The notes beneath the pieces are model-generated. The model worked only from the letters and a program-made list of their open reading frames with translations. It had not been told where the DNA came from and made no database searches. Both the position numbers and the translations under genes were made by a program. From NCBI GenBank assembly GCA_030704615.1, contig CM060732.1, positions 11,408,001-11,472,000 on the forward strand: a DNA stretch of 64,000 nucleotides. Direction: 5' to 3'. Origin of the DNA: Takakia lepidozioides. Taxonomy: Eukaryota; Plantae; Bryophyta. Shown here one piece after another: positions 3,670 to 63,745 of the stretch (the first letter of the stretch is position 1; every line of letters starts with the position of its first letter).

Positions 3670-3789
3670 CTGCACATGAACAGGATCAAGTAATATCAGA
3701 TTTTGAGCTTGGACGCCAAAATGTGCATGACATTTCCAGATTCTGTTGTGAACAGCTAACCCTCACCATTTCCTTTCAACATCGAGGTG

Positions 3790-5677: not shown

Positions 5678-5890
5678 TAAGCGTGTACATTTACCACCTG
5701 GTGTGAACGGGTATTGGGTTGAGTAGTAGAGGGTTGGGTAATATTTTTGACCCAGGGCTAGAGGGAGGGGTAAAGGTGACAACGGTAAACCATATTACCC
5801 CTGGTGCGAATGAAAAGCGATATCCATGGGATGCCACAGAAGACCCGCTCGCCTTCAAGGTCCAGCTCACTTCACTTGAGAGCAGAAGCC

Positions 5891-16682: not shown

Positions 16683-17250
16683 GATGAGGAGAAGCTATGG
16701 AATGAATATTTTTTTGACCCCAGTCAATGGTGGGACAACCGAGGCAAAAATGTGAATGCAAAAAGGTGAATGCCTGTCAGATTACCTGTCATTCTGAACA
16801 CTATGGCTGAACGAGATGTGGTGTCGTGGATTGTGATGTTTGCAGGGTATGCACAGCAGGGGTGCAAGATGGAGGCTTTGGAGACCTATGAACAAATGAT
16901 GGGGGAAGGGGTGAAACCGCCCACATAACGTTTGTGTGCGTTTGCAGTGCATCTGGCAGCCTTGGAAAAGGGCAAAGAGATCCCTGGTGACATCATCAAA
17001 TCTGTAATTGTACCAGATGTCATCCTGAACATTGCTCTGGTGGCCATGTATGCCAAATGTGGGAGCATTGAGGATGCCAAGGGAGTATTCAACACTATGG
17101 CTGAATGAGATGTGGTGTCATGGAACGCGATGCTTGCAGGGTGTGCAGAGCAGGAGCGCGAGATGGGGCTTTGGAGACCTGAAAGCAGATGATGGGGGAA
17201 GGGGTGAAGCTCGACCACATCATGTTTGTGTGCTTTGCAGTGCGTGTGCA
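16683..17250 (+). pseudogene. PLS-class PPR pseudogene preceded by an OSB-type WWDNR/PDF-motif segment
   Basis: EKLWNEYFFDPSQWWDNRGKN at 16683-16769. Then RDVVSW..MFAGYAQQG..EAL..YEQM..EGVKP and ALVAMYAKCGSIEDAKGVFNTM.*DVVSWNAM, with stops and frameshifts. Confidence 0.8.
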
Positions 17251-28270: not shown

Positions 28271-28399
28271 TCAAGAATGTTTTTCAAAACTCTGCCTTGA
28301 GTGGGTAATCATCTCTAAAATGATCTCTTTGCACTCTGGTGGCATTCAACGACCATGGGGAGGGAGGTGGGGATCTCAAATGGAAACGGGGGCGAAGAG

Positions 28400-29230
28400 G
28401 GCCAGTGCTCCCTTCCTACAATGTCCGTCCCTTCTGAAGTCAAAAGGACCATGCTTCGAAATGTGATAAGGCCGGCATTGGAGTACGCATCTTCCATGTG
28501 AGTTGACAACTCCAACCTTGCCAAGTCCCTTGAATGCATCCAGGCTGGGATGCTCTAACAGTGTATGTTAGCGTGCTCCAGAACAGCTATGTGGCTGTTC
28601 AGGTGCAGTTTTGCATACCTTCTTTGAGCTCTCCAGGGGGGTGAGTTCAAGGTCAGATGGTGGGGTCAGTCAGATACCCTAAGATAATCAACACTATTCC
28701 TTGGATACAAGACTACTGTTAAACAGTCCAAGTCCTGGCGGAAATAGGTAGAGAAGAGATTTCTAAGGAACTGGATTATCAGCACTCTAGACTTCACTCT
28801 GCTAGATGACGGTGAGTTGGCAACTGTTAGTATCCAAAGCCTTGTGGGTTTCCCACTGTCGGATGAAAAAGAAGTTAGGGATAAGACATCCCTGAACTTG
28901 TTTCCAGTCTGTGACATGGGTAATGATGTCCTTAAGGATGACCTGAAGGGCCTTCCTACTCTTTGCATTAGCCGGAATTCTAAATTAAGGACAGGGGGCC
29001 TACCTTTGAACAGCAAACAGATTCAGAGATGCAAGGGAAGTTGTAAATGCCCAACGCGTGGGCAACCTGAAGACAATATCCACTTCCTCTTTCACTGTCC
29101 ACGGTACTCTAGCCAAAAAGGAACCCTCTTCAATTGCATCAAAAACATTGAACTGGTTCACCCTAACTTCACCCTTTCTGTTCCCATGCATATGTTCCCA
29201 CGAACTGTGTTCCCAATAATGTGGTCCTGA
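28400..29230 (+). mobile_element. Old LINE 3' remnant with CCHC zinc-finger-like tail
   Basis: Homologous to 23210-23700 ([22 protein letters not shown]). Ends with CKCPTRGQPEDNIHFLFHCPRY. Confidence 0.75.
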
Positions 29231-32229
29231 TTATGCGCTGTGTGTGTAGGTACTAGGAGCAGGGGAACGTAGGGAGTTAAGAGTTTTCGGATGCAGCGCT
29301 GATCGGCCTCTGGTTATTGGTGAACTAGGCCCTCCCCACCAAACCATGATCTAAGCCTTCCCCTATCAAAAATAGTGCAGCTAAAAATATTTACACATAG
29401 TGTAGTGTGAAAAGGAAGGGGGGCATATATCCCCTTCTGTCTAATCCTAATCTAGTTCTTAGTGCAAGGTCTTGTTGTTATCCTGGTTCTCCCACACAGG
29501 TTGGCTACATCCATGTTGTTTATGATCAGAGTTCATGAAGCCCTCATCCACGCCGCAGCGGAAGAGAAGACATGGATGGGACAAGTGAAGGTGTTTCCTG
29601 CATAGTGCAACAGGCCTGACTAGGGTTCTGTCTTGCACCAGCTTAGTTTTCATGCTGATATAGTCACTCAAACAGCTTACCAGTGGGTTAATGACAGCCT
29701 ATGAGTTCACCATTTGCATGTAGCATCTACATTGAACCCCCTTTGTTGTCATGCAATCACCGAAAGTGCAAGGCAACATGTATCTACCATACAGTGCAGG
29801 TCTGATATTTCTATCCAACTCATGGTCTTTCCTTTATCTCTCAACTGACCCTCCTCTCATCATTCTTTTGCTGAGCGGATCTCTCTTCCCAATGTTTTAT
29901 CTCCCTTTTCTGATGCAAGTGCCCATATTGGACCAGACAGCCCTTCTATCACCATTCCCAATTGACATGCATCATCTCTTATCCTCTCTACACCATTCTG
30001 GTTTGAAGCCCAGACCACCACTCCATTCCATTTTCAAAAACCCTTTTTCCTCTATCACATGTCTCTATCCTTTTCCCTTCTATCAAGAGCAAGTCCTAAA
30101 TCTGCCCAAAACGATTTCTAAGTCACACCCAAAAAGGAAGCATCCTATGTTTGAGAGCTGACAGCACTCCACACAACTTCCACCCTACCTCACTTTCTCT
30201 CTACCACCAGGACTCGTATGAATTCCAGAAGTCTCCATTCCATTTGCCAAAATCTTTTTGTATCTCCCTCATTTCTATTGAGAGTCTCTCTAGCAAAATT
30301 CCATAGCAACTATCCCTAAGTCAGAGAGGCCTTGCATCTATGAACTTAGCTCTCTTATACTCCAGCTGAAGCGGTGGGATTGCCTGCCTGAAATGGCACC
30401 TCACCATCTCTGTCAGCAGCTCCCCTAACTCCTCTTGTCGTTTGAATGCCACGTTGTAAAAACAAAGATCTATGCATGTCAGATCCTGTCATTGCTCTGC
30501 CACTCCACCTTCAGATATTTCGTCGATTCAAGCGTTCCGTGAGTCTTGACAGCTCTGTTTCAAACCATGGCAGTAACCTTGTTGCTTGCCAACTCACTAC
30601 CCTATCCTACCATCTCTGCTAATCTACCCTAAGATCTGATGTGATAACAAGAAGACAGTCATTATCTGAAAGCTTCATGCTCTACATATTTCACCTTTGC
30701 TTCTTTATTTACAGATAACCTGTATCACTGTCCACAAGCCAATGCCCTCATTCTGGCAATTGCACCATTTCACAAGTGGTCAAGTCAGTAATCCCATCTC
30801 TGCCCTTGATCTGGCAGCAATTGCTTCTCCACAAGTGCAGCTTTCTATAATTGCACATGAATGCAATGGCGGCGGTATCAGTTTGCACACCCTACCTCTG
30901 GCAGATGCCCGTCATGATGGAGCTGCTCCATCATCTTAACTAGCCTTTGATCAAGTCGGCAACCCCACCTTCCTATTCCCTGGCAGCAGGCTGTTTCCCT
31001 TGCAAGTTCATCCTCCTTGTCATCGTGGTTATGAGAGTAACGACGGCACTGCCGCCCCTCCACCGAGCTGCTTTCCCCGCAACTCCTACACCTTCAGCGG
31101 TCAAATCACAGGAAGCACCGCCTCTATGCCTTCATTACTTCTGTCAGTAGTACATGATATTACTTCCCTTGCCCTTGATGAATCGTCCTGCAGCACTCCC
31201 TCTCTTCAAAGCCATGAAACGATTACTGCACCGCCTCCCTTCTCCTGGCTTGAGCAAAATTACCTAGCTGTTCCCTGCACGATTACCCTCCAGCAAGCCC
31301 TAAGCTTCCTCGACCCGCGTTTCTAAGGTAATCACCAGCGATGAAAGCCATTCATCCTATGGATGAAAAGGCGTATTTCATGACTTAGCCACATTTTGTC
31401 CTGGCAGAGCAATAGCATAGTGTGCCCATGGAATTACCTGTAGGCATGGATAGTTCCCTCCCGTTATTAGTACCAGGGCACTCCCTTTGTAGTAATGCCG
31501 GATCCAGATGCCAAGCAAAATTTCACTATTACTCCCCTGCATTCACACTACATATGTAGTGTGTCTCCCCTTTTAAGTGTCAGGGTCCTCACTGACCACC
31601 TTTACCGGCTGAACACCTACTGGTGGTATGAAAGGTTTCAAGTCGTGCCTTCTTCTCATCCATTCCCTGCCTGCTTTATCTTTCAGCCTACACCATCGGC
31701 CAGCTTCCCTTCCAGGATCATAAGGTACTCCCAACAGGTACATTGTGTTGATTCCCTTTCTTTTTCTGCTCCAGCTATCTTGGAGAGGTCCGTCTGTGAT
31801 ATTGTTTCTGATTGGCTTGCCTTGGCCTTCAGCAAAGGAAAGCCCCTCTCTGCTCATAGTCTTCAAGGCCACTTCTGTCTGGCTGGTGCAAGCAGTGTTG
31901 TTCTCAAGCTGACACCACCATCTGGTTTCCATGTAGCTTATCATGCCAATTTCATGGCCTTCCTCCTTGGCCATAATTTTTGTGCTCCATCCCTGAGCTT
32001 GCATCGTCATCCAGCCCTTCCTGTTCAAGTGACAGCGTCCCGACGGTCCATCTTTTCCGCCGGCCAGAGCAATTCCAATTTGTGACAATACCTTCTTCCT
32101 CTTCTTGTAGTTCATGCCAGGCAGGTCCTGATCTCCTTCCCCTACAAACCAACGTTTCCCAATTTTGTTGTTGCTCCCTGGCTCCTTGTTTTGAATCTCA
32201 GCTATCACTTGTGCTCCCATCGACATTCG

Positions 32230-32613
32230 CACCTTTCGTGCTGCCTCATTTCCTTCCTGCTCCATTTGTTGAAACAGTTGTGGGGTCTGTCCTTCAGAGC
32301 CATGTTGTGCATAACCTGCAATCATTTCTCTCCATGACCCCACTTTTCTGTGAGACATATTGTCCCACATGTGTTGTGCACCCTTCATGCTTCCACGTTT
32401 GGCATACCTGTCAACAATGGCAGTATCCATGATGATATCTGGTGCAATACCAGATTTGATACTGTCATCATGGACCTCTTCGCCTTTTACCAGGTCTGTC
32501 AGGTTCGCACATGCATTCAACACACACAGGAACGTCACCTGTTTGGGCTTCTCTCCTTCATCTCCAGCATCTGTAGAAAGCTCATTGCCTCTCTGAATTG
32601 CATCTGCTGGCAT
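32230..32613 (-). pseudogene. Degenerate PLS-class PPR gene fragment
   Basis: KPKQVTFLCVLNACANL..L.KG.EVH...IKSG...D....TAIVDRYAKRGSM..A..MWD.M....V.SW..MIAGYAQHG. The downstream part of ORF 31573-32613 loses PPR character. Confidence 0.75.
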
Positions 32614-41920: not shown

Positions 41921-44900
41921 TGAGATACGGGAACACGCCGAAGCCGCACTACGACTTCGTCCCGAGGCTACACGATTATAGTACGTGAACGGAAGCACGT
42001 AGCTTCCGCGTTAGCCCGCACTACAAGGCAACCCCCTCGGTAGCGCGGTTATAGTACGCGCACGCGCCAGGTGCGCACTAGCACGTGAACTCCCAAAGAA
42101 GGCGCAAGTTTCATTGCCCCTTGGATGGGGGTCACCCAATTTCGGCACTACGCAAACACACGATTAACCCAATTTACCTCTCCCACTTTTATAAGCTAGC
42201 ATGCATTCTACACACTAGCCAACCATACCATGCATCACCATTCCAAAAATAGGACGCACAACATTTGGAACCCATTTCCTTTATAACAAATTTTTGTACG
42301 ATACAAGTTTTTGTAATCGGATTCCTAAGCTAGCTAAGCCGGGCTAAGCATGCATTTCCTTCCCCACGCTCCAAGGTTGATGTCCCCATCAACGCTTCTT
42401 CCGCTTTTGAGGTCGCCCTTCGAAAGCTGCAACCGTCTCGGATGCGTTTCCCATTTCTGAGGCACGCACCCAAGATGCCTCCACATGATGATAGCCCTTC
42501 CATTTGACGAGATACTCCGTTTCTCGGTTCCTGAACCTCCTCGACTTAAGTATTTCCTCCACCTCGTACTCAGGTTCATTTTCATGATCCAACAGCATAG
42601 GTGGCGGACGCAACACTTGATGCCGATTCGGACGCGCTTCATCTTTGAAGTAAGGCTTCAAAAGGGAGACATGGAATACTGGGTGCACCTTGCTGTTTGC
42701 CGGCAGCTCCAATTCATACACATCCTCATTCATAACCTTCCGAATGCGAAAGGGTCCCGCATACGGAGGTACGAACTTCGGACTCACTTCCGGAGGTAGT
42801 CGGAAATTCTTGATGTTCAACCAGACCTCTGTGCCTGCCTCGAACTTCACTTCCCTTCGCTTCCGATTCGCCTGCCTTTCATACCGTTTCCTAGCTTTGG
42901 CAATATTGTACTTTGCGAGCTTCAACAAACGCTCGCGTTCTTCCAGTATCGCCGCTATTGCCGGTTCCTCAACGTCCTGGGCGGCCCAACTTGTCGGCAC
43001 CAGAGGTGCTTTTCCATAGACCAATACGAAAGGGGAAACTCCCGTTGCGGAGTGTTCTGTGTTATTATAACAGAACTCTGCCGCGTCTAAGTGTTCCATC
43101 CAGTCTGATTGGTCTGCCGACACGTAATTCCGCAAGAATTGCTTCACTACGGAATTCACTCTTTCCGTTTGGCCGTCCGTCGTAGGTCGGAAGGCGGTGC
43201 TCATCTTCAGCCTTGTCCCCATCTTCTTCCAAAGTGCTCTCCAGAATTTACTCGTAAACTTTGGATCGCGGTCCGAGACAATATCCTTCGGGACTCCATG
43301 ATGCTTTAAGACGTGGGCGAAGTAAAGTCGCCCTGTCTCCTGCGCCGTTGCCATCTCCTTGGTGGGGATGAAATGGCCCATTTTACTGAACCTATCTACC
43401 ACCACCATGATTGCATCGAATCCTTTTGACAGCGGCATAGCAGTCATGAAATCCATCGAGACGCTTTCCCAAGTCCCCTCTGGAATCGGCAAGGGTTGTA
43501 ACAGCCCCGCTTGCTTTTTGTACTCGCTCCGGTTTTGTTGGCATGTGGTGCATGTCTTGACATACTCCTCTGCCTCCTCCCTCAGTTTGGGCCAGAAATA
43601 CTCTTTCTTCAAGAGTGCCGCAGTGCGCTTGGCTCCGCCGTGGCCCGCAAGCGGGCTATCATGGCATTCTCTCAAGAGGCTATCTCTGATCCCTCCCTTC
43701 GGCACGTAAAGACGTTTTTGCTTATACCGGAGCAGTCCATTTTGCAAGTGGAACTGCGATTTAACCCCCATCCTCAAGTCCTGCATCACGAACTTCGCCA
43801 GCTCATCCTTCCGGCAAGCCTTCCGGATCTTCCTTTGGAGCGTCGTCTCGCCCTTGTACACCAACAAGAGCTGTTGCTTTCTACTTAAAGCATCGGCCAC
43901 CACATTGTCTCGTCCCGGTTTGTACTGGATATCCACGTCGAACACCGCCAAAGTATCTTGCCACCTAAGTTGTTTTGGGGACAACTTGGGCTGTGTGGCA
44001 AAATACTTCACCGTGACATTGTCCGTGAACACCTTCACTGGGTTGGAACCAACATAGTGGCGCCAGAGCTCAAGACAGTGCACCACCGCCTTCATCTCTT
44101 TCTCGTGCGTCAGCCACCGTCGCTCCACTTCGTTCAGTTTCTTACTTTCGTAAGCCACTGCACGTCCATCTTGCATCAGCACACCACCAATCGCGAAGTC
44201 CGACGCATCTGTATGTATCTCAAACGGACGATCGAACTCCGGGATTTTCAAGACTGGAGCTTCCGTCATCCGCTGCTTCAATTCAGCAAAAGCTTGGCCA
44301 CAAAAAATGTTCCATGCCCAGACCTTAGATTTACACAGAAGGTCTGACAGCGGCCCCGCAATCTTGGCAAAATTTCTCACATACTTCCGGTAATAGGAGG
44401 CGAGTCCTAGGAAGGATCGCACTCCCGGGACCGAAGTCGGAGGCTCCCAGTCCAAGATCACCCTCACCTTTCTGTCATCCATTTTGATCCCATCCTGTGT
44501 AATCACATGCCCCAAGAACTCCACTTTCGTGACCCCGAATTCGCACTTTGAAGCTTTGGCGTACAGCTTCCCTTCCCGCAACTTTTGGAACACCCTTTTG
44601 AGGTACTCCAGGTGCTCCTCCTTTGTTTTCAAGTACACCAAGATGTCGTCGATGTACACGATCACAAAGTCATCCAACCACTCCTGGAAAAGGCTGTTCA
44701 TCAGCGTGCTAAAGGTCGCAGGTGCATTGGTGAGCCCAAAAGGCATCACCAAGAACTCATATGAACCATACCTTGTCCTGCACGCGGTCTTCTCCTCATC
44801 TCCTTCTGCCACCCGAATCTGGTGATAGCCGGAGCGCAAGTCGATCTGGCTGAAATACTTTGCTCCTGCCAACCGATCGAAGAGGTCGTCGATTCTTGGC

Positions 44901-47730
44901 AAAGGGTACCGGTTTTTGATAGTTACCTTATTCAAAGCCCTGTAATCGACACACATCCGCAGCGTCCCATCCTTTTTATCTGCAAATAGCACCGGGGCTA
45001 CGTAAGGTGACTTACTCGGCTGGATGTACCCCTTTGACATTAGATCTTTGAGCTGAGTCTTCAACTCGACCAACTCTCTGTGACTCAACCGGTAGGGCGC
45101 CTTGGCAGGCGGTTCCGATCCCGGTATCACCTCAATCTTGTGGTCAACTCCTCATCGCGGTGGCAAGCCGCTTGGTAAATCCTCCGGCATCACATCCTGG
45201 TATTTCTCCAAGATCCCCTTGATCCAATCTGGGCTCGGCTCCCCATCGCCTTCTCCCTTCACTTCTCTAATGTAAAGCAAAAACTGGGGCTCGTGTGCCT
45301 CCTCCACGGCCCACTCCTTTGCTGACAAAAGGTTTATTCGCCCTCCCACGGATTTGGGCGTTTCCGACACTCGTAAAACCTCGCCACCATTCCCACATGG
45401 CAGCGTGACCACTCTCTTGCGGCCATCTATGACCGCTCCGGATTTGCTCAAAAAGGTCATCCCCAAAATGAGATCCACTCCATCGATCTCGCAAATGGTG
45501 AAGTTCTCACATCCCTCCCAACTTCCCAGTTGAAGAGGAACATCAAACGCCAACCTTGTCGCCAACTGTGGTTCTCCTTTGGCAGAACGCACCTCAATAG
45601 AGGCCCCCACGTCACTTGTCGGGAGTCCCAGCTTTTGTGTCGTTGCCGGTGTCATGAAGGAGTGCGACACTCCTGTGTCCACCAACAACGACACATTAGT
45701 TCCGGATATTATCCCATCCACGAACAATAACTGACTCCCTTTTCGTAAGGCGCCAGTTTCCTGATACAACTCACAAGAAAATTTGCCTACCTTGCAAGTC
45801 CTGGCGACCACCGCTTCCACCAAGCGACTGATGGTATCTTCCGACAGCTCCGTGGTCGCCCGAGTCATGTTCAATTGCCGGGGCTTCGTGCACTTCTTGG
45901 CCATGTGCCCGGGCTCCCCGCAATCGAAACACACTCCATCAAAGGTCGCCTTCTGTCCGCCATAAGCCGCTCCACCCGCTTTTCCTTTCGAAGCACCGGG
46001 TGCCGCCTTGACATGTGAAGGCCCTCCCTTCGATTTCCACGTGTCATTGTTGCCGCGTGGCCTATCCCACTTCTTTTCCGGTCGGAAGGAGTCACCTTCC
46101 CGCCGGGTCTTCTTGTGGTTCAGCTCCGTACGGCCTTGTCTCTCACCCCTAGGGACATCCGAGAAACATTCAGCCCTCTCAATTGCCTCGTTCAAAGTCT
46201 TGGGTGGCTTCTCCTCCAACTTCCGCCTGGCCCATGGGGCCAGTCCCGCCACAAAGTTGAAGACCATTTCTGGTTCTGCCATGTCCGCGACTTCGAGCAA
46301 CAACACATTGAAAGCCTGTACATACCCCCGAATGTCATCTGTTTGCTTCAAATTCCTCATCTTGTCCCGGGCAAGCCAAGACGCGTTGAGGGGCACAAAC
46401 TGTCTCTTCATCAATTCCTTGAACCCACTCCAGTTCAAGGTTTCTGGGCTTGGACCTCGGTCGTGAAGACGTTTCTGCCACCATTGTTGAGCATAGCCCC
46501 TCAAATAGGTGGCAGCCACTTCCACCCGATCCTCGTCACTCAACTTGGCCGCCCGGAAGTACTGCTCTAGCTCCAGGAGCCAGGTGTTGAGTGCCTTCCG
46601 ATTTCGGACGCCCTCGAAGGTGCCGGGTTCTTTAGGCTTCACCTTAAACTTTGCCTTAGTGGAAGTGGCATTAGCCGCCTTCAACACGTCTTTCAACGTC
46701 CCGCCAAACTGCGCCAACAACCCTTTCCTTAAAGGCAGCCGGCACGGGAGGCATCTCTTGGTTTGTCGGAGCTCTCAAGGATTCCTTAGGCTCCGACTCC
46801 TCGGATTCCTCCCGCTCTTGAGCGGCCTCGTTTTCAGAAACATGCATCGCTTCCTCAAACGGCCGCCTCGGTGACACGTCGCTCCCATCGGGCTCACCGG
46901 GATCATCATCTTTTGGGCCGTTCCGCTTTCGCTTCGGCTTGCCCGACCCCATAGTGAGGCCAATCCCAAGGACGATCGCGTACTGAACTCTAAGCTCTGA
47001 TACCAAGTGTCGTGCACCTCCCTTCGGTAAGCTCCTCTTCAAGTCATAGTTACTCGCTTTGATGCGCGCGCCTGACTCCCAACCTGGCCGCCGGGCCAAC
47101 TTGGAGCTTCGGCTGCTCACCGGGACATAACGGTCCCCCCCTTTGCTTCCCACTAAACCCTCCACCTAATTGGGACTAGTGGAATTCCCTTTGGTAGATG
47201 GCAGTCCGGAACAGCTCCCCACTCTTTGGTCGCTTTCCGGCTCGCTCGCTTACTCACTAGTTTTTGGTCACCAACGGGCTTGCACCGTTCTCGGGGTTAC
47301 TACTCCCTATATATACTTCTGTAGCTGTCCGCGGGGGTTTCACAACCAGCCATGCCATTTTATGGCGAACCACCACGAAAACCCTCGACTCCCGGTGATG
47401 AGTCGCGATGAGTCTTGGCCCGCTCATCACGGCCCCTATGGACCGTGATGAGTCCCAAGACTCCCCACGACTCCCACCACGAGGTCTCCGCCCCCATGGT
47501 GAGTCCTATGCCACCCCCACTAAGTCCCGCTAAGCTACCACCACCCCTTGTGGAGCCACCCCCATCGCAACCCGGTGTGCGGGGCTCCACCTAGTGAGCG
47601 CCTCCGCCTCCTTGAGTGCCTTGGGCACTCAAGGGTGCTTCAGCCCCCAATAACTATCGTTGCCGATGCCCCCATCACAGGGGCAGCCCCTCATGTGTCC
47701 CGACCCCCTGCCCTCAAGGCAAAGGGCCGC
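41921..47730 (-). mobile_element. Ty3/gypsy chromovirus, copy 1 (gag-PR-RT-RH-INT-chromodomain), nearly intact
   Basis: Gag starts at 46952 with a frameshift near 46722. Zinc knuckle CFDCGEPGHMAKKC, protease LVDTG, RT YIDD, RNase H TDASD, integrase H-x6-H...C-x2-C and DGQTER, GPF module, chromodomain YEVEEIL...YLVKWKGY. In-frame TGA at 45152-45154. PPT about 42355-42368; 3' LTR part 42354-41921; 5' LTR part from 47008. Confidence 0.95.
46994..47005 (-). promoter_or_regulatory. Primer-binding site (initiator tRNA-Met)
   Basis: Minus strand reads TGGTATCAGAGC, 2 bp after the LTR end ...CACGACA. Confidence 0.9.
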
Positions 47731-50700: not shown

Positions 50701-53700
50701 CGTCATAACCCCACATAGGCCACAGTCCCACAGCCCGTCACAGCCTGTCACAGCCCCACAAGCCATAGGTCACAGCCCATCACAGCCCATCACAGCCTAT
50801 CACAGCCCCACAAGCCATAGGCCACAGCCCGTCACAACCCCATCCATGGCCACTTACGGCAGTTTAGCCATTTCTCCAAAGGGGTTTAGCCACGCCAAGC
50901 TAGGGTTTGTGTCTCTTGGACTCTAAGCTTCTTTGCACCGAGCTATGGTGGCTGTGAGGAAATCAGCAAGGTATTCTTGCTCTTTCGGCTCCCACACACC
51001 ACCAATAGTAGCCCTAAGCCATGAGGTGGTTGCCACAACCCAAGCCTTCTTTCTCACTAAGACTCCCCAAACACGCCACTAAACTCAAATGGCAAACAAC
51101 CAAGCCTTGCTGGTTTCCAGCCCTTGTGAGCACTCATTCAAGCGCTCTCCTTGGCCATAACATCTGTCTTAGAGCTTATTCCAGCCCCCTACACCTGCCA
51201 CTTCAAGAGCCATGCTCTATCTAGGCTCGAGGTTGAAACCCCAACTCACATATGCCCTACAAGGGAGCCGAGCCCAGATTGGATCAAGGGGATCTTGGAG
51301 AAATACCAAGATGTAATGCCGGAGGATTTACTAAGCGGCTTGTCACCATAAAGAGGAGTTGACCACAAAATTGAGGTGATACCAGGATCGGAGCTGCCTG
51401 CCAAGGCGCCCTACCGGTTGAGCCACAGAGAGTTGGTCGAGTTGAAGACTCAGCTCAAGGATCTAATGTCAAAGGGGTACATCCGGCCGAGTAAGTCACC
51501 TTATGGAGCCCTGGTGCTATTCGCAGACAAGAAGGATGAGACGCTGCGGATGTGTGTCGATTACAAGGCTTTGACTATAAAAAACCGGTACCCTTTGCTA
51601 AGGATCGACGACCTTTTCGATCATTTGGCTGGAGCGAAGTATTTCAGCCGGATCGATTTACGCTCCGACTACCATCAAATTCGAGTGGCGGAAGGAGATG
51701 AGGAGAAGACCGCGTGCAAGACAAAGTATGGTTCATATGAGTTATTGGTGATGCCTTTTAGGCTCACCAACACTCCCGCAACCTTTAACACGCTAATGAA
51801 CAGCCTTTTCCAGGAGTGGTTGGATGACTTTGTGATCGTGTACATCGACGACATCTTGGTGTACTCGAAAACAAATGAAGAGCACCTGGAGCACTTCAAA
51901 AGGGTGTTCCAGAAATTGTGGGAAGGGAAGTTGTATGCCAAAGCTTCAAAGTGTGAATTTAGGCTTACAAAAGTGGAGTTCCTGGGGCATGTGATTACAC
52001 AGGGATGGGATCAAAATGGATGACAGAAAAGTGAGGGCGATCTTGGACAGGGAGCCTCCGACTTCAGTCCCGGGAGTGCGATCCTTCCTAGGACTCGCCT
52101 CATATTACCGAAAGTATGTGAGAAATTTCGCCGAGATCGCGGGGCCGCTGTCAAACCTTCTGTGTAAATCCAAGGTATGGGTATGGAAAACCTTTTGTGG
52201 CCAAGCTTTTGCCGAGTTGAAGCAGCGGATGGCGGAAGCTCCAGTCTTGAAAATCCCGGAGTTCGACCGTCCGTTTGAGATTCATACAGATGCATCAGAC
52301 TTCGCGATTGGAGGTGTACTCATGCAAGATGAACGTCAAGTGGCTTATGAAAGTAAGAAACTGAATGAAGTGGAGCAACGATGGCCAACGCACGAGAAAG
52401 AGATGAAGGCGGTGGTGCATTGCCTTGAGCTTTGGCGTCACTATGTTGGTTTCAACCCGGTGAAAGTATTCACGGACAATGTCACAGTGAAGTATTTTGC
52501 CACGCAGCCTAAGTTGTCCCCAAAATATCTTAGGTGGCAAGACACTTTAGCGGTGTTGGACGTGGATATCTAGTAAAAACCGGGATGGGACAATGTGGTG
52601 GCCGATGCCTTAAGTAGAAAGCAGCAGCTCATGCTGATATACAGGGGCGAGACAACACTCCAAAGGAAGATCCGGAAGGCTTACCGAAAGGATGAGATGG
52701 CGAAGTCTGTGATGTGGGACTTAAGGATGGGGTGAAATCGCAGTTCCACATGCAAAATGGACTGCTCTGGTACAAGCAAAAGCGTCTCTATGTGCCGAAG
52801 GAAGGGATCAGAGATAGTCTCTTAAGATAATGCCATGATGGCCCGCTTGCGGGCCACGGTGGAACCAAGTGCACCGCGGCACTCCTGAAGAAAGAGTATT
52901 TTTGGTCCAAACTGAGGGAGGAAGCCGTGGAGTATGTCAAGACATGCACCACATGCCAATAAAATCGGAGCGAATACAAAAAGCAAGCGGGGCTGTTACA
53001 ACCCTTGCCGATTCCAGAGGGGTCTTAGGAAAGTGTCTCAATGGATTTCATGACTGCTATGCCGCTGTCAAAAGGATTCAGTAAAATGGGTCATTTTATT
53101 TCCACCAAAGAGACGGCAATGGCACAGGAGACGAGACAACTTTACTTCGCCCACGTCTTCAAACATCATGGACTCCCGAAGGATATTGTCTCGGACCGCG
53201 ATCCAAAGTTCACAAGTAAATTTTGGAAGGCACTCTGGAAGAAAATGGGGACGAGGCTCAAGATGAGCGTCGCCTTCCGCCCTACGACGGACGGCCAAAC
53301 GGAAAGGGTGAATTTCGTGGTGAAGCAGATCTTGCCGAATTACGTGTCGGCAAATCAATCGGACTGGGTGGAGCACTTTGACGCGGCAGAGTTCTGTTAT
53401 AATAACACAAAACACTCCGCAACGGGAGTTTCTTCTTTCGTATTGGTCTATGGAAAAGCACCTTTGGTGCCGACAAGTTGGACCGCCCAATACATTGAAG
53501 AACCGGCAGCAGCAGCGGTGTTGGAAGAACGCGAACATTTGTTGAAGCTCACAAAGTACAATATTGTCCAAGCTAGGAAACGGTATGAACGGCAGGCGAA
53601 TCGGAAGCAGAGGGAAGTTAAGTTTGAGGCAGGCACGGAGGTCTGGTTGAACATCAAGAATTTCCGACTACCTCCGGAAGTGAGTCCGAAGTTCGTACCT

Positions 53701-54546
53701 CCGTATGCGGGACCCTTTCGCATCCGAAAGGTTATGAATGAGGATATGTATGAATTGGAGCTGCCGGCAAACAACAAGGTGCATCCGGTATTCCACGTCT
53801 CCCTTTTGAAGCATTACTTCAAAGATGAAGCGCGTCCGAATCGGCATCAAGTGTTGCGTCCGCCACCCGTGCTGTTGGATCATGAAAATGAACTTGAGTA
53901 TGAGGTGGAGGTAGTGCTTAAGTCGATGAGGTTCAAGAATCGAGAAACGGAGTATCTCGTGAAATTGAAGGGCTATCATCATGTGGAGGCATCTTGGGTG
54001 CGTCCCTCAGAAATGGGAAACGCATCCAAGGCGGTTGCAGCTTTCGAAGGACGACCTCAAAAGCGGAAGAAGCGTTGATGGAGACATCAACCTTGGATCG
54101 TGGGGGAGGAAATGCATGCTTAGCCCGGCTTAGCTAGCTCAGGAATCCGTTTGCAAAAACTTGTATTGTACAAATTTTGTTGTAAATGAAATGGTTTCCA
54201 AATATTGTGTTTCATATCTTATTGGAATGGTGATGCATGGTATGGTTGGCTAGTGTGTAGAATGCATGCTAGCTTACAAAGTGAGAGAGGTAAATTGGAT
54301 TAGTCGTGTGTTTGTGTAGTGCCGAAATCAGGTGACTCCCATCCAAGGGGCAAGGAAACTTGCACCTTCGTTGGGAGTTCACGTGCTAGTGCGCACCTGG
54401 TGCGTGTGCGTACTATAACTGTGCTACCGAGGGGGTTGCCTTGTAGTGCGGGCTAACGTGGAAGCTACGTGCTTCTGTTCACGTACTATAATCGTGTAGC
54501 CTCGGGATGAAGTCGTAGTGCGGCTTCGGCGTGTTCCCGTACCTCA
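47733..54546 (+). mobile_element. Ty3/gypsy chromovirus, copy 2 (inverted relative to copy 1; rearranged, many stops)
   Basis: Gag 47753-48700, duplicated integrase piece 48740-49141, foreign insert 49141-51260, pol 51264-54078, PPT, LTR part 54113-54546. Protease region is missing. Confidence 0.92.
49490..51260 (-). mobile_element. 5' fragment (leader + gag start) of an unrelated LTR retrotransposon inside copy 2
   Basis: Gag-like EPRRYSGAVGTIKLDDFIQEFDSWCD...AWKGLFQHLEGPPMDDY (49546-49950); 10-bp cacagccc(a/g)t repeats at 50690-50850. Confidence 0.5.
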
Positions 54547-56744: not shown

Positions 56745-59700
56745 GTGCTATGTTGTCGACGCAGACGGACAATTGAGTATGGTACATCACGTCTTGAGAT
56801 GCTTCGCGTGAACAACTTTCTAAAACGTCTTGAGATTGATGGGATAGCCATCAACACAGATTTAGCCAAGCTCTTGGCTGTCGCTTTGCGTGAAAATCGT
56901 GCCCTGCAAAATTTGCATTTGTCTCAGTCCTCCTTTATGCCTGTGTCTACATCCCGCGGGTCGGTAGAGGGAGTGCAAATGTTGGTGACTCCTTTGGTTG
57001 CCACAAATCCCTTAGGCTCCAACTCTGTGCTGCAGACGTTACGGATGGGGTGCTGTCTCGGATACGATAGTGTCGTTAATGACGAGGCAGCCAAGCACGT
57101 GGCAGCGATGCTGTGTGGCAATTTTTCCTTGTTGGAGTTTGAGTTATTGTATTGGAAGATGACGTCGGAGGGCAGTGTTGCTTTCGGCAGGGCTTTGGCC
57201 ACCAACACCACCCTTACAACTCTAAGCGTGCAAGGCTGCACGATTGGGGCGGATGGTGTGGAGGCGATAGCACAACATCTCGCACACCACAATTCTTCTC
57301 TCACACGCCTTAATGTTGGCCACACTTGGAGTACAGAGATAGAGGGAAGCAAGGCAACCAACGCATTGGCCAACATGTTTCGATCCAACTCCACGTTGAC
57401 CTATGTGGACGTGTCATACAATCGGTTTACCGAAGAAGGTATTGTGGAACTCTTCAAATCACTGACCACCAACACGTCTTTGACAGACCTTGATCTTACT
57501 AGTTGCAAGGTTGTCGCCGGGGACAAGGTGTTGGCAGCAATGGGGGATTCACTGCGAGCCAATCTGTGTCTACAAAGACTCCGTACAGATCAATCTTCCT
57601 TGAGCCTTGTAGATTGGAGTGGTGTAGAGAGAAGGGAGCAGCAATCGGTGTTACGAGGAATGATGAGGTCCGTGAGTCCGGAGGCAGCGAGCGTGCTGAC
57701 TTACGGCGCCACTGGTACTCAACCATACTTCCACTTTCTCATATTACATTCTTCCTGTTTTGCTTTGCACCTCTTGAGGACGCCGAATGTAATGTAACAA
57801 GTAACTCCGCAACACCGTGCAAGAATTCCGAATTCAGAACTAATCATTGGATGGTGTGGATCGTAAGTCGATCAATGTAATAATTTGATCCTGTCGCTGA
57901 CGTGGATTACGCAGTGGAACCCCTCGGCCAGTGGGGATTGCAGCCTGTCAGACTCCCATCAAAGTTCACCTCATCCTCCCAGTGGCAGAGGGGTTCCACA
58001 TCACCTAACCTGCCGTTAAGAGACGCTATAGAACCGGCAAACATTCTCGGTGTATACAATTTATCCCAATCCTAACATGAGATAAATGAATGAATACCAA
58101 AGTTCAAACTGAGGCTGTATCAATTCACTATGATTCATTTACTTTTACTCTCCCCTTGAAGAGATGGGCTCAAACCTTCCAAAATAAAAGTAGAATAAAA
58201 GACGCATTTCTTGGAACAAAAACACACATACGGTATCCGTATATTGCTGCGGTGCATCTAGTTCTGCTGTACTGGTCCCGTCTCGCGAAAGCTTACTCAA
58301 TCCCTCCACCAACTTAGTCAAGCTAGTCACAAGCTAGCTGCATGGAAGACCCACCTGTCTGACATGCTGTCAGGTCCTCCACATGCTGTGTCAGGATGTG
58401 CTCACCAAATGTTTCCATAGGATTCCATGCCATTGCGCAATTGCATTCTTAGGTTTGTTCTTGTATCATCAGCCCCCACTTCTGCTTTTTGCATTTAGCA
58501 GTCAACCATAATCAACCACGAGTACTGTAGAGCGAAAGATCACGGAGCATCATCAAGAGTTGGTGAAAAGTCGAAATCTGATGATTTCACATGCGATTGT
58601 GGTGATGGGTGGTGTGCGGTCTCAAGGCTCGTATTCCAGGAACAACTGCTCCGGTTGAGAGTAACAAGTGGTGTGTATCCGTGCAGGGGTTAATGACTAT
58701 GGTGGAGAAAAGGTCAAAAGCAGCAACAGGAACCAAAACCATGTGGTATGAGGTCTCCTCGTCACTCCTTGGGGGTACCAAATGGTATTGTCTACGATCG
58801 GTGTATGTTAGCCTAGGTCATAAGTGCAAGTGAGTGTGTCTGGAAGAGGTCATCGTCTCAAAGTTCCTTCCTTTTGTCATGAGGTACCCCTACCTTGTCC
58901 ACAGGCATCTCTAACTGATGGGTCAGAGGTATTCAGTTCTCAAATATGTTAAGAGCACCTTTTACTGAATCATGAGAACACTCAGGATCCTGTCACAACT
59001 TATGAATGCGCCTAGTGCAAAACGCGCTTCATTCTAAAGTTGCAAACCTTGCGAAAGATCACGAAGTGACTCCTGTTCCAAAATTACTAAAGTACATCAT
59101 ACGACATAAGTAGCTTTTATGAAAAGTTAATTCTTTTCACTCTAGACTCACAAGCGAGCTCATCAGATCTCTGCAACTGTGCTTACCACATCTCTAGTTT
59201 TGTTCTGAAACAACTCATTTGTTTTTTGCAACATGGTTTTAGACTCTGGATACGGTAACAAATGTATGCATTGCTTCAAACAATATTGTGGACACAAGTT
59301 GACAAAGAAGCATTGCAAGATCACTCGAGAAGCGTTTGGCACTTCAAGAGAACTCTTAAAGCTTTGAATCAATGTTCTGGAAACTATACAACACTTCTGA
59401 CTCAAGATCTCTTGAATTCTACCCAGGTTTACCTTGTTCAACAAGTGTGGCCACCCCCTAACGATGATCGGGAAACCACCCTGGATGTCATCTTTTTCCA
59501 TGGATTCCAGTTTGGAAAGGAAAGCAGTGTTTCACAGCACACATGGGTGCATCGTGACAATCATGAACTCTCCTGGCCAGTGAAGTGGCTGCCAGAAGAC
59601 CTGGAAGGAACTGTGCGCGTTCTACTCGTATCTCATAGTGCAGATGTTACATATTCCAACATCCAAGCTGTTGACGACTTTGGCAGGAGGTTGCAGCAAA

Positions 59701-62700
59701 GCTTAGTCAGGTACCTTGCTGGAATGTGAAGGCAGATTCGGAGCCTAGCTCCTAGTCCTCGATCTTATCCACCTAGATGTTGAAAGGAATTGGTGAGGGT
59801 TAGCTGTTCAGAACAGGATCTGGAAATGTCTATGCACATTTGGTGTCCAAGATCAAAATCTGATATTGCTTGATCCTGTTCATGTGCAGTTCATCTCGTT
59901 CCAGTTTGGGATGGAAAAAACCAATTGTGCTTGTTGGCCATGGCTACGGAGGTTTGGCTGTGAAGAGCTTAGTGGTACATACTGCAAGGACTGAAACCAT
60001 GCCATGTGCGAAAGAACTGGACAAGGAGGCTGCTGAGAATGCAAAAGCGTTCTTATCAAATCTCCGAGGCATTGCATACTATGCTGTTCCCCATTCCGCA
60101 ATGAACTTGGGAAGTTTTGGTAAATTGGAGCCCTCAGGAAATATACAACACGACCTGATTGAGCGTTTATCAACAGAATTTGAGGGAGTTATTTGTAGAC
60201 TTCAAATCCACATCTTTGCTTTCGGAGAGGGCAAACCAACACAAAATTGGGTACGTTCTGTGGAGTTTTTCATAATGACAAACCAAGAAATGCTGCGGAG
60301 TATTGGTACTAATAAAATTTACTAATTGGATAGGAACATGATGCAAGGCATTTTATGCTAGGTGTCAAGTAGTGCAGTATTTTAGGGTTAGCTAGGTGTA
60401 CATGCTGCTTCAACATTAACTAAGACTGGAGAATTTTTCCCCTCTGAGAGGTTGAATTGCTTACTTTCCATCACATGTGGAGAACACAGACCTATGGTAA
60501 ACCTCCCTGCACAAGCAACGATGCACAGTGCAACAATGCCGTGCAGATGAATCAGAAGCTGAATTGTGTTATGTATTGTCTAAGTGGTTTAGATATCTTG
60601 AAGGCTGCCTTTTATATAACAACGCTTTGAGGTTCAAGAAAGTGTTACTACTCCAGTGGATGAAAAGATGAATTTTCTATCTCTTAGGGTTGGATTGTGC
60701 CGTATGAGTCTGCCATAAGATTATCTGGCTGTAACAACTACAAAGTGGAGGAGTCGGATCATCTGGATATCACGCGACCTCCTTCCAGAGAACATATCAT
60801 ATATGACAAATTGTTGATGCTGCTGAAGATTTGCCAAAAACCACCGGTACGTCCTCATGTCAGTAGTGGACATTTTATCTCCTCGCCATAATTGTCCCTC
60901 ACTTGTGTTATCATTAATGTGTCCCTGTGTTCCGCCGATGTAATCTGGATTTTGTAGCATAGTGATGACTAATGCGCAACACCTTCCACTGAGCTCTAGG
61001 TGAGCAATATCTTCCTTATGCTACAGGCTATCCTGCTGCAATCAATCTTGCAATCTGACCCTGTGAAATGTGTCCTACAACGTCTCTTCTCAGCTTTAGT
61101 GCCCATGGTTTTTTGTAGATTGTGTTCTTAGCATATTTGCATATTGTGCATATGTTCTAATTTTTATCTGGTCACTGGAGTGCAGGGTGATGTGAACTTT
61201 GCTCTAATGATCTCTCAACTTGAAGGAGGGTGCCCAGAGGGCTACAACAACATAACTGAGTTGTTCCTCGAGGTATGAATCAATGGATGATGACCATAAG
61301 TGTATTCTATTTACTGATCTTCACCGGAACTTGAGGCTTAAAAGCGGAACCTATTGATCCGGAGTTTGTGTTTTGCAGCGCAACATGATCAGGGAGGCAA
61401 TTGCTTTTCTTCTGGATGTTTTGAAGCCTAACCTTCCAGAGCATGCCATGCTTCAAACTAAGGTAGAGTCAGCTCTGACTCTTACAATGTGCAGTGCAGA
61501 TGGACTTGCATGGTCTGTGCCCTCCTGTAACTTGTCTGTTGGTTTCCTGTTCTTTCCCCTTGCTATGGTGTGCATCTTGATTATCCTTCTATGACCTTGT
61601 TACTAGTCCCCCCCCCCACTTTACATAGCTACCTTGCACGTACTTAGTACTTACCTGTAGATATGATCGACAAGGTCATGTCAATCCACTGGATAATGCG
61701 GCTGACATGTGTAAATGAATGTTGTTGGTTATGCAGGTCTTGAAGATCAGTCTGGTCGCGTCCCCCAGCATAGCTGATTCAATTTTGGCAAAGGGCATGT
61801 TCAGCCATTATGACCGTCCTCAAATTGCTGAGCTCTGTCGGAAAGCTGGTCTTTACATGCATGCCCTTCAGGTCCTATTCTGCCTTTGCACTCTTGCACT
61901 TTGTTCTCTGCTCATCATACTTCAATCTGTTAGTTTTGTTGATCTACACTGGTGCGTCTTGACTCAGGGCCGCAATATACTTTCCATTAGGCCTGATTGC
62001 ACCTGCTCTTGGAGGAACAGGAAATATCCTGAATACACTGACTGAAAGCGGAGACCTGTTATCGGGAGTGAATATTTTGTCCCCTCTTATTTGTGTTCTT
62101 TTTAATCTGGTTTTGTCTCCACATTAATTTTTGCAGTGTGTCTGGATGTATACATCATCCTTGCCCTGGAGGTCAAACAGTCACTTTTATGTCCATGCAA
62201 ATAAAGTTTCTAATGATCCTTCCTTGTGCAGGTGAACCCAGAAAATGCGCCTCTGGTAGTTGGGCAATTGCTGGATGATGGCCACCCCAAGGATTTCATC
62301 AAGGACCTTATCTTGTCTGTCTGCTCTTTACTGCCAGTGGAGGCACTGGTTGATGAGTGTGAGAAGAGGTAATAAATTGTTCCAGGGTGGCTTTATGTCA
62401 TTTTTAATCTGTTTGTTTGCTCCTAGCATGATATCTATGTCACAGTCAACTCTCGGGTTATGTGAAAGATGAAAATGTATGGAAAGAGGGCACATTACCG
62501 ACTTTTTATTCCATGTGGAAGCTGTCTGTTGTCTCAGGTATGAATCAAACTAACAGTTTGATGGGTTGGACAGGAACCAGTTGGGATTGCTGACTCAGTT
62601 CTTAGAGCATCTTGTGAGTGAAGGGACCGAAGAAGTGCATGCACATAATGCATTGCGGAAGATCATCGTAGATACAAACGAAGATCCAGAGCTCTTTCTG

Positions 62701-63157
62701 ACCAGAAACCGCTACTATGACTCTAAGGTCATTGGTAAATATTGTGAGACAAAGGAGGATCACACACTTGAAGTAATTGCATATAGACGTGGTCAATGTG
62801 ATGCTGAGCTCGTTGATGTCACAAACAAGCACAAGCTCTTCAAGATTCAGGCCAGGTACATCCCAACTCTATCTCCCGTCATTTGTGATTTTGTCTTGTG
62901 TTTTGCGTGATGTCTTAGAAAAGATAAAGAAATTACCTGACTACATCTTGTTGGTGCTTCTTAGGTATGTGGTGGAGCGCATGGATCCGGACCTGTGGAA
63001 AAAGGTTATGCACTCAGAGTATCCAGAATACAGGAAGCAGCTTACTCTTGAGGTGTTGTCTATTGTTCTACCAGAGAGCAAGAACCGAGAGCAGGTGTTA
63101 GCCCTGTTAGCCACTTTGAAGGCACACTTGCCCCATGAGTTAGTTGAGCTTTTATAG
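56745..63157 (+). CDS. Copy C (most complete) of the LRR / pseudo-alpha-beta-hydrolase / clathrin heavy chain chimeric gene, about 894 aa (876 aa from ATG 56799)
   Basis: Inferred exons: 56745-57671, 59427-59710, 59890-60250, 60688-60846, [61027-61062], 61186-61272, 61379-61462, 61737-61871, 62232-62368, 62574-62855, 62965-63157. Total 2685 nt, open to TAG. RI-type LRRs, DVIFFHG...WLPEDL...GHGYGG...DH, then clathrin peptides [74 protein letters not shown]. Confidence 0.78.
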
Positions 63158-63219
63158 TCAAGAATGTTTTTCAAAACTCTGCCTTGAGTGGTAATCACCT
63201 CTAAAATATACTCACCATC

Positions 63220-63292
63220 TTTCCGCACAAACTGGGCGCGGGGTCAATGGCCACAAGGCTACGGCAAATAACATCTTATGAGTACATTCTTT
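63220..63292 (+). mobile_element. 73-bp 5'-truncated insertion of the LINE 3' tail
   Basis: caaactgggcgcggggtcaatggccacaaggctacggcaaa...cttatgagtaca matches 23866-23925. Flanked by 9-bp direct repeat ctcaccatc (63211-63219, 63293-63301). Confidence 0.85.
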
Positions 63293-63379
63293 CTCACCAT
63301 CAATTACAGTGGTGGCATTGAACGACCATGGGGAGGGAGGTGGGGATCTCAAATGGAAACGGGGGAAGGAAGAGAGGCC

Positions 63380-63745
63380 CTGTGTCCCTTTCTACACTGT
63401 CCCTCCCTTCTGAAGTCAAAAGGACCATTTTTTGCTATGTGATTAGGCCTGCTTGGAGTACGCATCAGCCGTTCGAGTTGACAACTCCAACCATGCCAAG
63501 TCTAGGAATGCATCCAGATTGGGGCGCTCTAAGAGTATATGTTAGCATGCTCCAGAACAGCTATGTGGCTGTTCCGGTGTAGTTTGGCATACCTCCTTTG
63601 AGCTCTCCACGGGATGGTTTCAAGGTCAGATGGTGGGGTTGGTGGAACAGAATGTCTAACACCAGACACCTAAGATAATCAACTCTCTTTCTCGGATACC
63701 AGACTACTATTGAACAGGTAGAAGCGGTTTTTAAGGGTCTGGATA
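63380..63745 (+). mobile_element. Old LINE RT remnant downstream of copy C
   Basis: Homologous to 28410-28790 and 310-500. Confidence 0.7.

Follow-up and report, generated by a model that had tools for sequence, protein, structure and literature searches.

On balance, and with some reserve, we interpret the locus as one member of a transcribed, multi-copy chimeric gene family that arose by intron-level exon shuffling, and whose weakly constrained product is probably a non-catalytic binding or scaffold protein. The family is lineage-specific and combines exons of an NLR-type alpha/beta-hydrolase with exons derived from the clathrin heavy chain. All positions refer to the window, i.e., the whole 64-kb stretch of DNA that was analysed, and the features are collected in Table 1.

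A transcribed hydrolase-clathrin exon chain

The core of the locus is a chain of nine exons (59427-63157), and all eight of its introns were recovered in spliced contigs of two RNA runs from two different studies. Every intron is of the GT-AG type and the exon phases are compatible, so that the exon chain with matching phases proposed in a preliminary description of this DNA holds for its hydrolase-clathrin part; the open reading frames themselves were confirmed in the sequence. The same description had predicted a phase-0 join between hydrolase and clathrin, and the spliced contigs indeed contain the joint 60846 to 61186 (H3 to C1). Neither this joint nor that between C3 and C4, likewise present in RNA, can be yielded by native genes. 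The fusion is in frame, located at a phase-0 intron and transcribed.

H1 does not contain any ATG, and a candidate start is an in-frame ATG upstream of its acceptor, within an open reading frame that has a counterpart in copy B at 24317. As an unspliced RNA contig spans 59207-59454 with one difference, it is possible that the gene uses its own start at 59262 when 59262-59426 stays in the RNA. In one expressed paralogue, a foreign 5' exon, which was not found within the 64-kb window, is spliced to 59427 and carries an in-frame TGA four codons upstream. Expressed paralogues furthermore feature frame-breaking exon deletions of 22 bases at 61773, two bases at 60808 and one base at 62327.

Table 1. 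Features of the locus and of its further copies (positions within the window).
Feature	Position	Strand	Remarks
RNI-type LRR exon, copy C	56745-57714	+	Pfam LRR_6, 2e-16; first ATG 56799
119-base exon between LRR and hydrolase	58627-58745	+	RNA joints 57714 to 58627 and 58745 to 59890
Candidate start, in-frame ATG and 55 codons upstream of H1 acceptor	59262-59426	+	ORF 59262-59729
H1, hydrolase exon	59427-59710	+	Phase 0 start, phase 2 end; joint to 59890 in both RNA runs
H2, hydrolase exon	59890-60250	+	Nucleophile motif GHGYGG
H3, hydrolase exon, domain end	60688-60846	+	Ends in phase 0
C1, clathrin-derived exon	61186-61272	+	RNA joints; native plant boundaries
C2, clathrin-derived exon	61379-61462	+	RNA joints; native plant boundaries
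C3, clathrin-derived exon	61737-61871	+	RNA joints; native plant boundaries
C4, clathrin-derived exon	62232-62368	+	PDB alignments
C5, clathrin-derived exon	62574-62855	+	PDB alignments
C6, clathrin-derived exon	62965-63157	+	PDB alignments; stop at 63155-63157
Insertion of about 100 bases with LINE 3' tail, copy C only	63208-63309	+	Absent from copies A and B
LINE-like sequence immediately behind the unit, from the 3' part of ORF2	63310-63717	+	Also in copies A and B
Copy B, with LRR exon, 119-base exon and the hydrolase-clathrin exons	17748-28321	+	94.7-97.3% identical to copy C
LINE inside copy B	19616-23926		4.3 kb; Exo_endo_phos and RVT_1 domains
Copy A: decayed partial copy, H1/H2 intron to 3' end	544-3790	-	Self-comparison, exon translations

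Origin of the hydrolase and clathrin parts

A search with H2 gave 101 homologues at E<=1e-3 (best E-value 1.6e-17), including NB-ARC proteins of Sphagnum jensenii, Riccia sorocarpa and Marchantia polymorpha, while no homologue exceeded 53% identity to H2 in 1.84 billion representative proteins. H1 and H3 are 39% and 35% identical to residues 27-127 and 263-311, respectively, of the Sphagnum hydrolase-NB-ARC protein P0006. With hydrolase-NB-ARC(-LRR) proteins of Sphagnum, Marchantia and Riccia among the homologues, the domain belongs with the N-terminal hydrolases of bryophyte hydrolase-NLRs, as had been suggested. Single hydrolase exons gave no Pfam match at E<=0.1 and a PDB search with H1 returned chance matches only; the homologues P0007, P0021, P0024 and P0067 do match DUF676 in Pfam.

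The gene structure points to the same source. Exons 2-4 of the hydrolase-NB-ARC gene of S. jensenii comprise 299, 391 and 153 bases with phases 0|2|0|0, and H1-H3, with 284, 361 and 159 bases, agree with them in phases and intron positions. The end of H3 corresponds to the end of Sphagnum exon 4, immediately before the NB-ARC exon, and the clathrin exons occupy the place where a Sphagnum-type gene goes on into that exon; the HNLs were also described to have a phase-0 intron separating hydrolase and NBS (PMC3352924). Compared to the bryophyte HNL/Hyd-NLR proteins (Xue et al., 2012, PMC3352924; Chia et al., 2024, PMC11218826), the unit thus shares the alpha/beta-hydrolase family (39-47% identity to Sphagnum), the three-exon layout with identical intron phases and the phase-0 intron at the domain end, but clathrin-derived exons stand in for the NB-ARC and the C-terminal plant-type LRR. 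No Pfam match to NB-ARC was obtained among the open reading frames of the hydrolase-clathrin unit, in agreement with the earlier view of an NB-ARC-less protein, and a Clathrin domain was found in none of the 20 longer hydrolase homologues that were scanned.

A further difference from the HNL/Hyd-NLR proteins is Gly in place of the nucleophile Ser. In place of GHSxGG, the motif reads GHGYGG in copies A, B and C, with the Gly codon 59942-59944 at the expected Ser position; aligned homologues mostly show GHSFGG, and a few also lack the Ser (N, C or D instead). The presumed catalytic His is retained at codon 60760-60762 in H3. Because of the exchange of Ser for Gly in the nucleophile elbow, common to all three copies, the product would be non-catalytic, and the proposed dead hydrolase is in line with this motif.

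For the clathrin part, Pfam detected Clathrin repeats within 61373-62910 (6.6e-19). The preliminary description had assumed an integrated clathrin heavy chain; what is present are two non-adjacent internal pieces, corresponding to about bovine residues 528-628 (C1-C3, with C3 aligning to 585-628) and 807-1008 (C4-C6), with 305 of about 1675 heavy-chain residues present, with residues 629-806 or so deleted and without the terminal domain, the light-chain region and the trimerisation hub. In comparison to the clathrin heavy chain (PDB 1xi4, 6sct), the six exons keep native exon boundaries, but the full architecture of N-terminal propeller, seven CHCR repeats, light-chain-binding and trimerisation regions is missing. 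C1 gave no clathrin match in the PDB search, since plant and animal sequences diverge in this part, and was identified instead by comparison with a native plant clathrin gene. The boundaries of C1-C3 are those of native plant clathrin exons and include the native C1 acceptor, which rules out a cryptic C1 acceptor inside the clathrin exon. No further clathrin-like DNA was found within the window with the flanking native sequence as query.

Where plant heavy chains are nearly invariant, the clathrin part is only 73% identical to them, and for C5 this is also the best identity to any heavy-chain fragment, the plant sequences being nearly identical among themselves. The substitutions hit deeply conserved positions about as often as others (manual count on alignments). 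Despite a divergence of 27% of the residues, the frame contains no stop and no frameshift, and 12 splice sites are intact. It ends at a TAG located at the position of a native GAG, i.e., at a nonsense codon inside clathrin-derived DNA, which continues out of frame to about 63210 and features a 2-base insertion and a 3-base deletion within the roughly 50 clathrin-derived bases beyond the stop.

Taken together, the retained ancestral intron phases of the hydrolase exons and the native boundaries and acceptor of the clathrin exons speak for the suggested exon-shuffled origin. Three exons from an alpha/beta-hydrolase gene of the NLR type (DUF676/SERAC1-like), with their ancestral intron positions and phases, are joined at the phase-0 intron before the NB-ARC to six exons from two clathrin heavy chain stretches; the native clathrin acceptor serves the hydrolase-to-clathrin splice, and the frame terminates at the nonsense codon within the clathrin-derived DNA. 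The predicted product of about 574-629 residues would combine a pseudo-hydrolase head with a clathrin-like helical-solenoid tail, and may function in binding or scaffolding and not as an enzyme or a coat subunit.

The LRR frame upstream of the chain

An alternative, which we consider very unlikely, is the originally proposed immune receptor of about 890 residues without NB-ARC, in which an LRR (donor at 57671) is spliced to the hydrolase (acceptor at 59427) and the clathrin part serves as decoy or targeting module. Donor GTGAGT behind 57671 and the H1 acceptor at 59427 do agree in being phase 0, and both are kept in copies B and C, the H1 acceptor belongs to an ancestral phase-0 intron that requires an upstream coding exon, and LRR and hydrolase occur on one transcript in copy-B-type RNA. 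Moreover, an MLKL-like kinase adjoins copy A, and hydrolase domains of Marchantia NLRs by themselves caused cell death in Nicotiana benthamiana (PMC11218826). The proposed join 57671 to 59427, however, appeared in no RNA contig. The three LRR-bearing contigs used either the donor following 57714 or an odd joint, and in both RNA runs contigs of the copy-B type linked 57713/4 to 58626/7. The next joint led from 58745 to 59890, so that the copy-B-type transcript skips H1. Along this route the LRR frame hits a TGA ten codons into the 119-base exon, in copies B and C alike, so that a single LRR-hydrolase-clathrin protein of about 894 residues does not result. The LRR is hence sometimes part of the hydrolase-clathrin transcript, but does not run in frame into the hydrolase in the available RNA.

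The history of the LRR likewise argues against the receptor. Homology between copies C and B begins only at 56990, inside the LRR exon, the LRR of copy B being cut at its 5' end, and dS between B and C is 0.064 for the LRR versus 0.019, which reflects a different divergence history. Copy A is devoid of an LRR, and none of the interaction regions mapped on the heavy chain is contained in the clathrin pieces. The upstream frame represents a truncated fragment of an RNI-type LRR, which was duplicated along with the hydrolase-clathrin unit. Its LRR_6 repeats lie within 56745-57797, its best homologues are generic RanGAP/RNI-like LRR proteins with 26-31% identity, and its Atlas neighbours are generic LRR_6 clusters. 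TORNADO1-type proteins combine an RNI-type LRR with a following Roc-COR GTPase; no Roc-COR follows the LRR at this locus, and the generic RNI-type matches of about 30% identity do not support the suggested specific link to TORNADO1. A hAT transposase upstream of the LRR was a guess without Pfam support and was dropped.

Copies, selection and the integrated-decoy comparison

Three copies had been reported, and hydrolase-clathrin parts are indeed present in A, B and C, but an LRR exists in B and C only, and A is partial. Copies B and C have an open chain and do not differ by any exon indel, but copy A has lost H1 and C1 and carries a frameshifting 1-base indel in C6. An MLKL-like kinase is the neighbour of copy A. 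The LINE within copy B is flanked by an 11-base target-site duplication (CTTTTGTCATG), and the insertion specific for copy C is 93% identical to the 3' end of this LINE at 23858-23930. In the self-comparison, B 28337-29142 matched LINE positions 22994-23779 with 70-75% identity, and C 63310-63717 matched B 28337-28726. LINE-driven retro-copying of the whole unit was rejected as an explanation, since introns are retained and no 3' end is common to the copies.

Counting against the shuffled gene family, the hydrolase, LRR and clathrin parts are all internal pieces of genes that lack the native starts and ends, and LINE sequence abuts the unit. The lack of any homologue above 53% identity and the clathrin substitutions at deeply conserved positions likewise count against it. 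The locus could therefore also represent a transcribed but functionless mosaic, its fragments stitched together by illegitimate or transposon-associated recombination, spread by segmental duplication and now decaying, a reading that we regard as doubtful though worth serious consideration. The LINE sequence directly after the unit in all copies, the LINE in B and the LINE tail in C, all in a transposon-rich region, fit such an origin, as do the decay of copy A, the frameshifting deletions in expressed paralogues and the 5' exon with its in-frame stop. The unit also resembles mosaics of the Pack-MULE or Helitron type, which share unrelated internal fragments with introns, chimeric spliced transcripts, multiple copies and transposon-rich DNA. 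In contrast to these, the self-comparison revealed no element termini, terminal repeats or target-site duplication at the borders of the unit, the 5' and 3' homology ends differ among the copies, and the frame bears signs of purifying selection.

The comparison of dN/dS among the copies, which the preliminary description had called for, gave values below 1 against copy A (0.49-0.67) and near 1 between B and C (about 0.9-1.4). For A versus C, dN/dS was 0.49 and dS (0.053) equalled the intron divergence of 0.0535; exon divergence (3.1%, 42/1344) was significantly lower than that of the introns (5.35%, 91/1701), and gap columns were far fewer, with 4 in exons versus 99 in introns. For B versus C, recent evolution looks neutral because dN/dS reached 0.93 (hydrolase and clathrin) and 1.18 (LRR), and exons had diverged about as much as introns, as a functionless mosaic would lead one to expect; on the other hand, no exon indel faced 28 intron gap columns. 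The clathrin frame and its 12 of 12 intact splice sites at 27% residue divergence also oppose the mosaic, and so do the indels that occur directly after the stop codon but nowhere before it. In a neutral simulation of the clathrin frame, the probability of finding no stop was 0.028 before counting indels, so that such an open frame would be improbable under neutral drift. The hydrolase-clathrin unit is probably under weak purifying selection, while some copies are decaying.

In an NLR with an integrated decoy, the decoy domain is attached to an NB-ARC sensor and is the part to which an effector binds. The chimeric family shares with such proteins the fusion of a conserved host-protein fragment to a domain of the immune-receptor repertoire as well as multiple, fast-evolving copies, but the sensor chassis is absent because the gene has no NB-ARC switch; clathrin as NLR integrated domain was not found in the literature searched. 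An NB-ARC-less immune family, in which a dead NLR-type hydrolase "executioner" head would carry a fast-evolving mimic of the clathrin leg baiting effectors aimed at clathrin-mediated endocytosis, and in which some copies would add an N-terminal LRR via 57671 to 59427, is in our view unlikely. Should the protein be produced and maintained by selection, the locus would show the reuse of an NLR-type hydrolase in a non-NLR context, with part of a core trafficking protein replacing the NB-ARC, and would provide a clean and datable example of exons shuffled between introns that are both of phase 0. If it is only a transcribed mosaic, it would illustrate how readily such fragments can pass for new receptor architectures where a genome is rich in transposons, a point of relevance to the annotation of fern and lycophyte immune repertoires.

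One further candidate, P0176/L001, was rejected as a member of the same unit, being a diverged clathrin fragment from another organism without hydrolase; it adjoins an acetolactate-synthase small-subunit gene.

RNA support for a hydrolase-clathrin chimera

The chimera of hydrolase and clathrin exons is genuine: a transcribed gene family assembled by exon shuffling. The ORFs of the preliminary description are present in the window, and a Pfam scan of ORFs placed RNI-type LRR_6 repeats at 56745-57797 and Clathrin repeats at 61373-62910; the hydrolase pieces, scanned as single exons, gave no Pfam match. Two public RNA runs from two studies, which contain roughly one fifth of the words sampled, were each compared as contigs over 57300-63200. 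These contigs are spliced, most introns having little or no depth, and all eight hydrolase-clathrin introns of copy C, the copy first described, were recovered with GT-AG ends and with phases fitting a single frame that ends at 63155-63157. The hydrolase-to-clathrin join proposed earlier is thereby confirmed by RNA, in phase 0. Two of the joints, from the last hydrolase exon (H3) to the first clathrin-derived exon (C1) and from C3 to C4, are impossible products of native genes.

Several paralogues contribute contigs: some are identical to copy C, those bearing the LRR equal copy B at all eight differences compared (the stretch holds 18 B/C differences), and others carry variants absent from both. 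Frame-breaking exon deletions occur in some (22 bases at 61773, 2 at 60808 and 1 at 62327), and a joint 60844->61378 omitting C1 would be the product expected of a copy-A-type locus. Native-type clathrin transcripts with consensus residues were also found in the same runs, as loose contig ends.

Features of the window and of the compared gene
Feature	Position	Strand	Remarks
Copy A	544-3790	-	Begins in H1/H2 intron; lacks C1; 1-base indel near end
Kinase ORF	5804-7495	+	MLKL_N/DUF1221-like plus protein kinase; intact, 563 residues; adjoins decayed copy A
Copy B	17748-19615 plus 23927-28321	+	94.7-97.3% identity to copy C
LINE within copy B	19616-23926	+	4.3 kb, nearly full-length, in intron; endonuclease and reverse-transcriptase domains
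LTR retrotransposon	42389-46720	-	Ty3/chromovirus type; gag, protease, RT, RNase H, integrase, chromodomain
Fragments of similar LTR elements	51376-52023, 53041-54078	+
Copy C	56990-63207	+	Self-comparison
Hydrolase exons H1-H3	59427-59710, 59890-60250, 60688-60846	+	284, 361, 159 bases; phases 0/2/0/0; next exon clathrin-derived C1
Sphagnum jensenii gene			Short exon 1 (30 residues); exons 2-4 of 299, 391, 153 bases; phases 0/2/0/0; next exon NB-ARC
Hydrolase introns	59710/59890, 60250/60688	+	Spliced contigs
Joint H3 to C1	60846/61186	+	Spliced contigs
Clathrin introns	61272/61379, 61462/61737, 61871/62232, 62368/62574, 62855/62965	+	Spliced contigs
Exon C3	61737-61871	+	Bovine heavy chain 585-628 (alignment)
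Exon C4	62232-62368	+	Bovine heavy chain 807-851 (alignment)
Exon C5	62574-62855	+	Bovine heavy chain 852-948 (alignment)
Exon C6	62965-63157	+	Bovine heavy chain 946-1008 (alignment)

Origin of the two parts

With exons searched one by one, exon H2 yielded 101 relatives in an exhaustive search, none above 53% identity. The longer of these comprise hydrolase-NB-ARC(-LRR) proteins from Sphagnum, Riccia and Marchantia, hydrolase-caspase proteins and one protein with a kinase domain and no Pfam hydrolase family match, which bears out the proposed assignment to the Hyd-NLR/HNL class (Xue et al. 2012, PMC3352924; Chia et al. 2024, PMC11218826). None of 20 longer H2 homologues has a Clathrin domain in a Pfam scan, and the hydrolase-clathrin architecture is likewise absent from the literature searched. 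We rebuilt the exon structure of a Sphagnum jensenii gene for a hydrolase-NB-ARC protein (P0006); its hydrolase domain ends agree with those of the unit to one or two residues. Because phases and domain ends agree, the unit corresponds to exons 2-4 of a P0006-like gene, from which it differs in lacking the first exon and the NB-ARC.

Judged by its residues, the hydrolase would be dead, as suggested before: glycine (GHGYGG) takes the nucleophile position in copies A, B and C, while most relatives have serine and a few N, C or D. The presumed catalytic His is kept in H3. For two Marchantia hydrolase domains on their own, Chia et al. 2024 (PMC11218826) reported responses resembling cell death in Nicotiana benthamiana.

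In a native plant clathrin gene, C1 and C2 lie ahead of C3 with identical exon boundaries. C1 uses the native acceptor, and homology reaches beyond it, by a few bases, into the intron of the native gene; the fusion therefore joined two phase-0 introns. Between C3 and C4 some 178 residues are missing, here too between introns of phase 0. A TAG stop replaces a native GAG, and the roughly 50 bases of clathrin-derived DNA that follow carry an insertion of 2 bases and a deletion of 3. The earlier claim of an integrated clathrin heavy chain is not supported: the in-frame clathrin-derived exons are internal fragments without propeller, light-chain region or trimerisation hub. Elsewhere, a Logan contig of another organism (L001, SRR36092047) holds at 5812-7650 a clathrin heavy chain fragment that is diverged, frameshifted and in part duplicated, next to an acetolactate-synthase small-subunit gene; it has a few derived residues in common with the fragment of the unit, and no hydrolase.

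The LRR and its link to the hydrolase

The proposed LRR-to-hydrolase join 57671/59427 is phase-compatible, with both sites kept in copies B and C; it occurs in no RNA contig of the two runs. The joints seen run 57714->58627, through a 119-base exon (58627-58745), and 58745->59890, skipping H1, and in this splice form of either copy (B or C) a TGA closes the LRR frame after ten codons. A receptor uniting LRR, hydrolase and clathrin therefore finds no support in the RNA at hand, and any function of the chimera is putative. The 119-base exon is also open in another frame (ATGs at 58693, 58699 and 58741), which continues in the hydrolase frame across 58745->59890; a copy-B-type transcript could encode an H1-less form downstream of the LRR ORF, and this frame match may be chance (one in three).

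One expressed paralogue uses acceptor 59427; its 5' exon was not found within the window and carries an in-frame TGA four codons ahead of the joint. H1 itself holds no ATG. An unspliced contig spanning 59207-59454, together with an in-frame ATG at 59262 that B and C share, makes a gene start inside the old intron upstream of H1 possible.

The LRR has a history separate from the rest of the unit, since B/C homology starts at 56990, inside the LRR exon, and the B/C comparison gives a dS of 0.064 in the LRR (dN 0.076) against 0.019 elsewhere. Over the coding part (56990-57590 vs 17748-18348) divergence is 3.5-9.5% per 200 bases, three times that of the flanking non-coding DNA (~2%); the pattern points to patchy gene conversion with other LRR paralogues as donors, or to a history of its own. 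Its relatives are generic RNI/RanGAP-like LRR proteins only, and neither Roc-COR nor NB-ARC was found in the unit. PPR-repeat ORFs lie at 31573-32613 (-) and 16932-17108 (+), the latter a PPR-like fragment immediately 5' of the truncated copy-B LRR.

Selection, copies and neighbourhood

Between B and C, dN/dS for hydrolase plus clathrin is 0.93 (23 nonsynonymous, 7 synonymous), exons (1.75%) diverge about as much as introns (1.97%), and gaps amount to none in exons and 28 columns in introns. Against copy A, taken as the older copy, dN/dS is 0.49-0.67 and dS, at 0.053, is the same as the divergence of introns (0.0535); exons diverge less than introns (42/1344 vs 91/1701; chi-square p about 0.004) and hold 4 gap columns against 99. 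The clathrin part has ~73% identity to plant heavy chains, themselves nearly invariant in these exons, yet it is free of stops and frameshifts and keeps twelve splice sites intact; neutral simulation to the observed clathrin divergence stayed stop-free in only 2.8% of runs, indels not counted. We conclude that selection held the frame over most of its history, constraint being weak or recently relaxed. Alternatively, a diverged, functional clathrin paralogue could be the recent source of the clathrin pieces.

Self-comparison found the three copies described earlier, but the LRR is present in only two, as is the open hydrolase-clathrin frame. The LINE in copy B is flanked by an 11-base target-site duplication, CTTTTGTCATG, and lacks a poly(A) tail; copy C contains, at about 63220-63292, a ~75-base tail fragment from this LINE family. 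In all three copies the clathrin-derived DNA is directly followed by the 3' part of a LINE. The kinase ORF is closest to two Diphasiastrum complanatum proteins (63% identity), followed by many Sphagnum proteins; these matches would make the host probably a lycophyte related to Diphasiastrum, and the ORF possibly marks an immune-gene neighbourhood.
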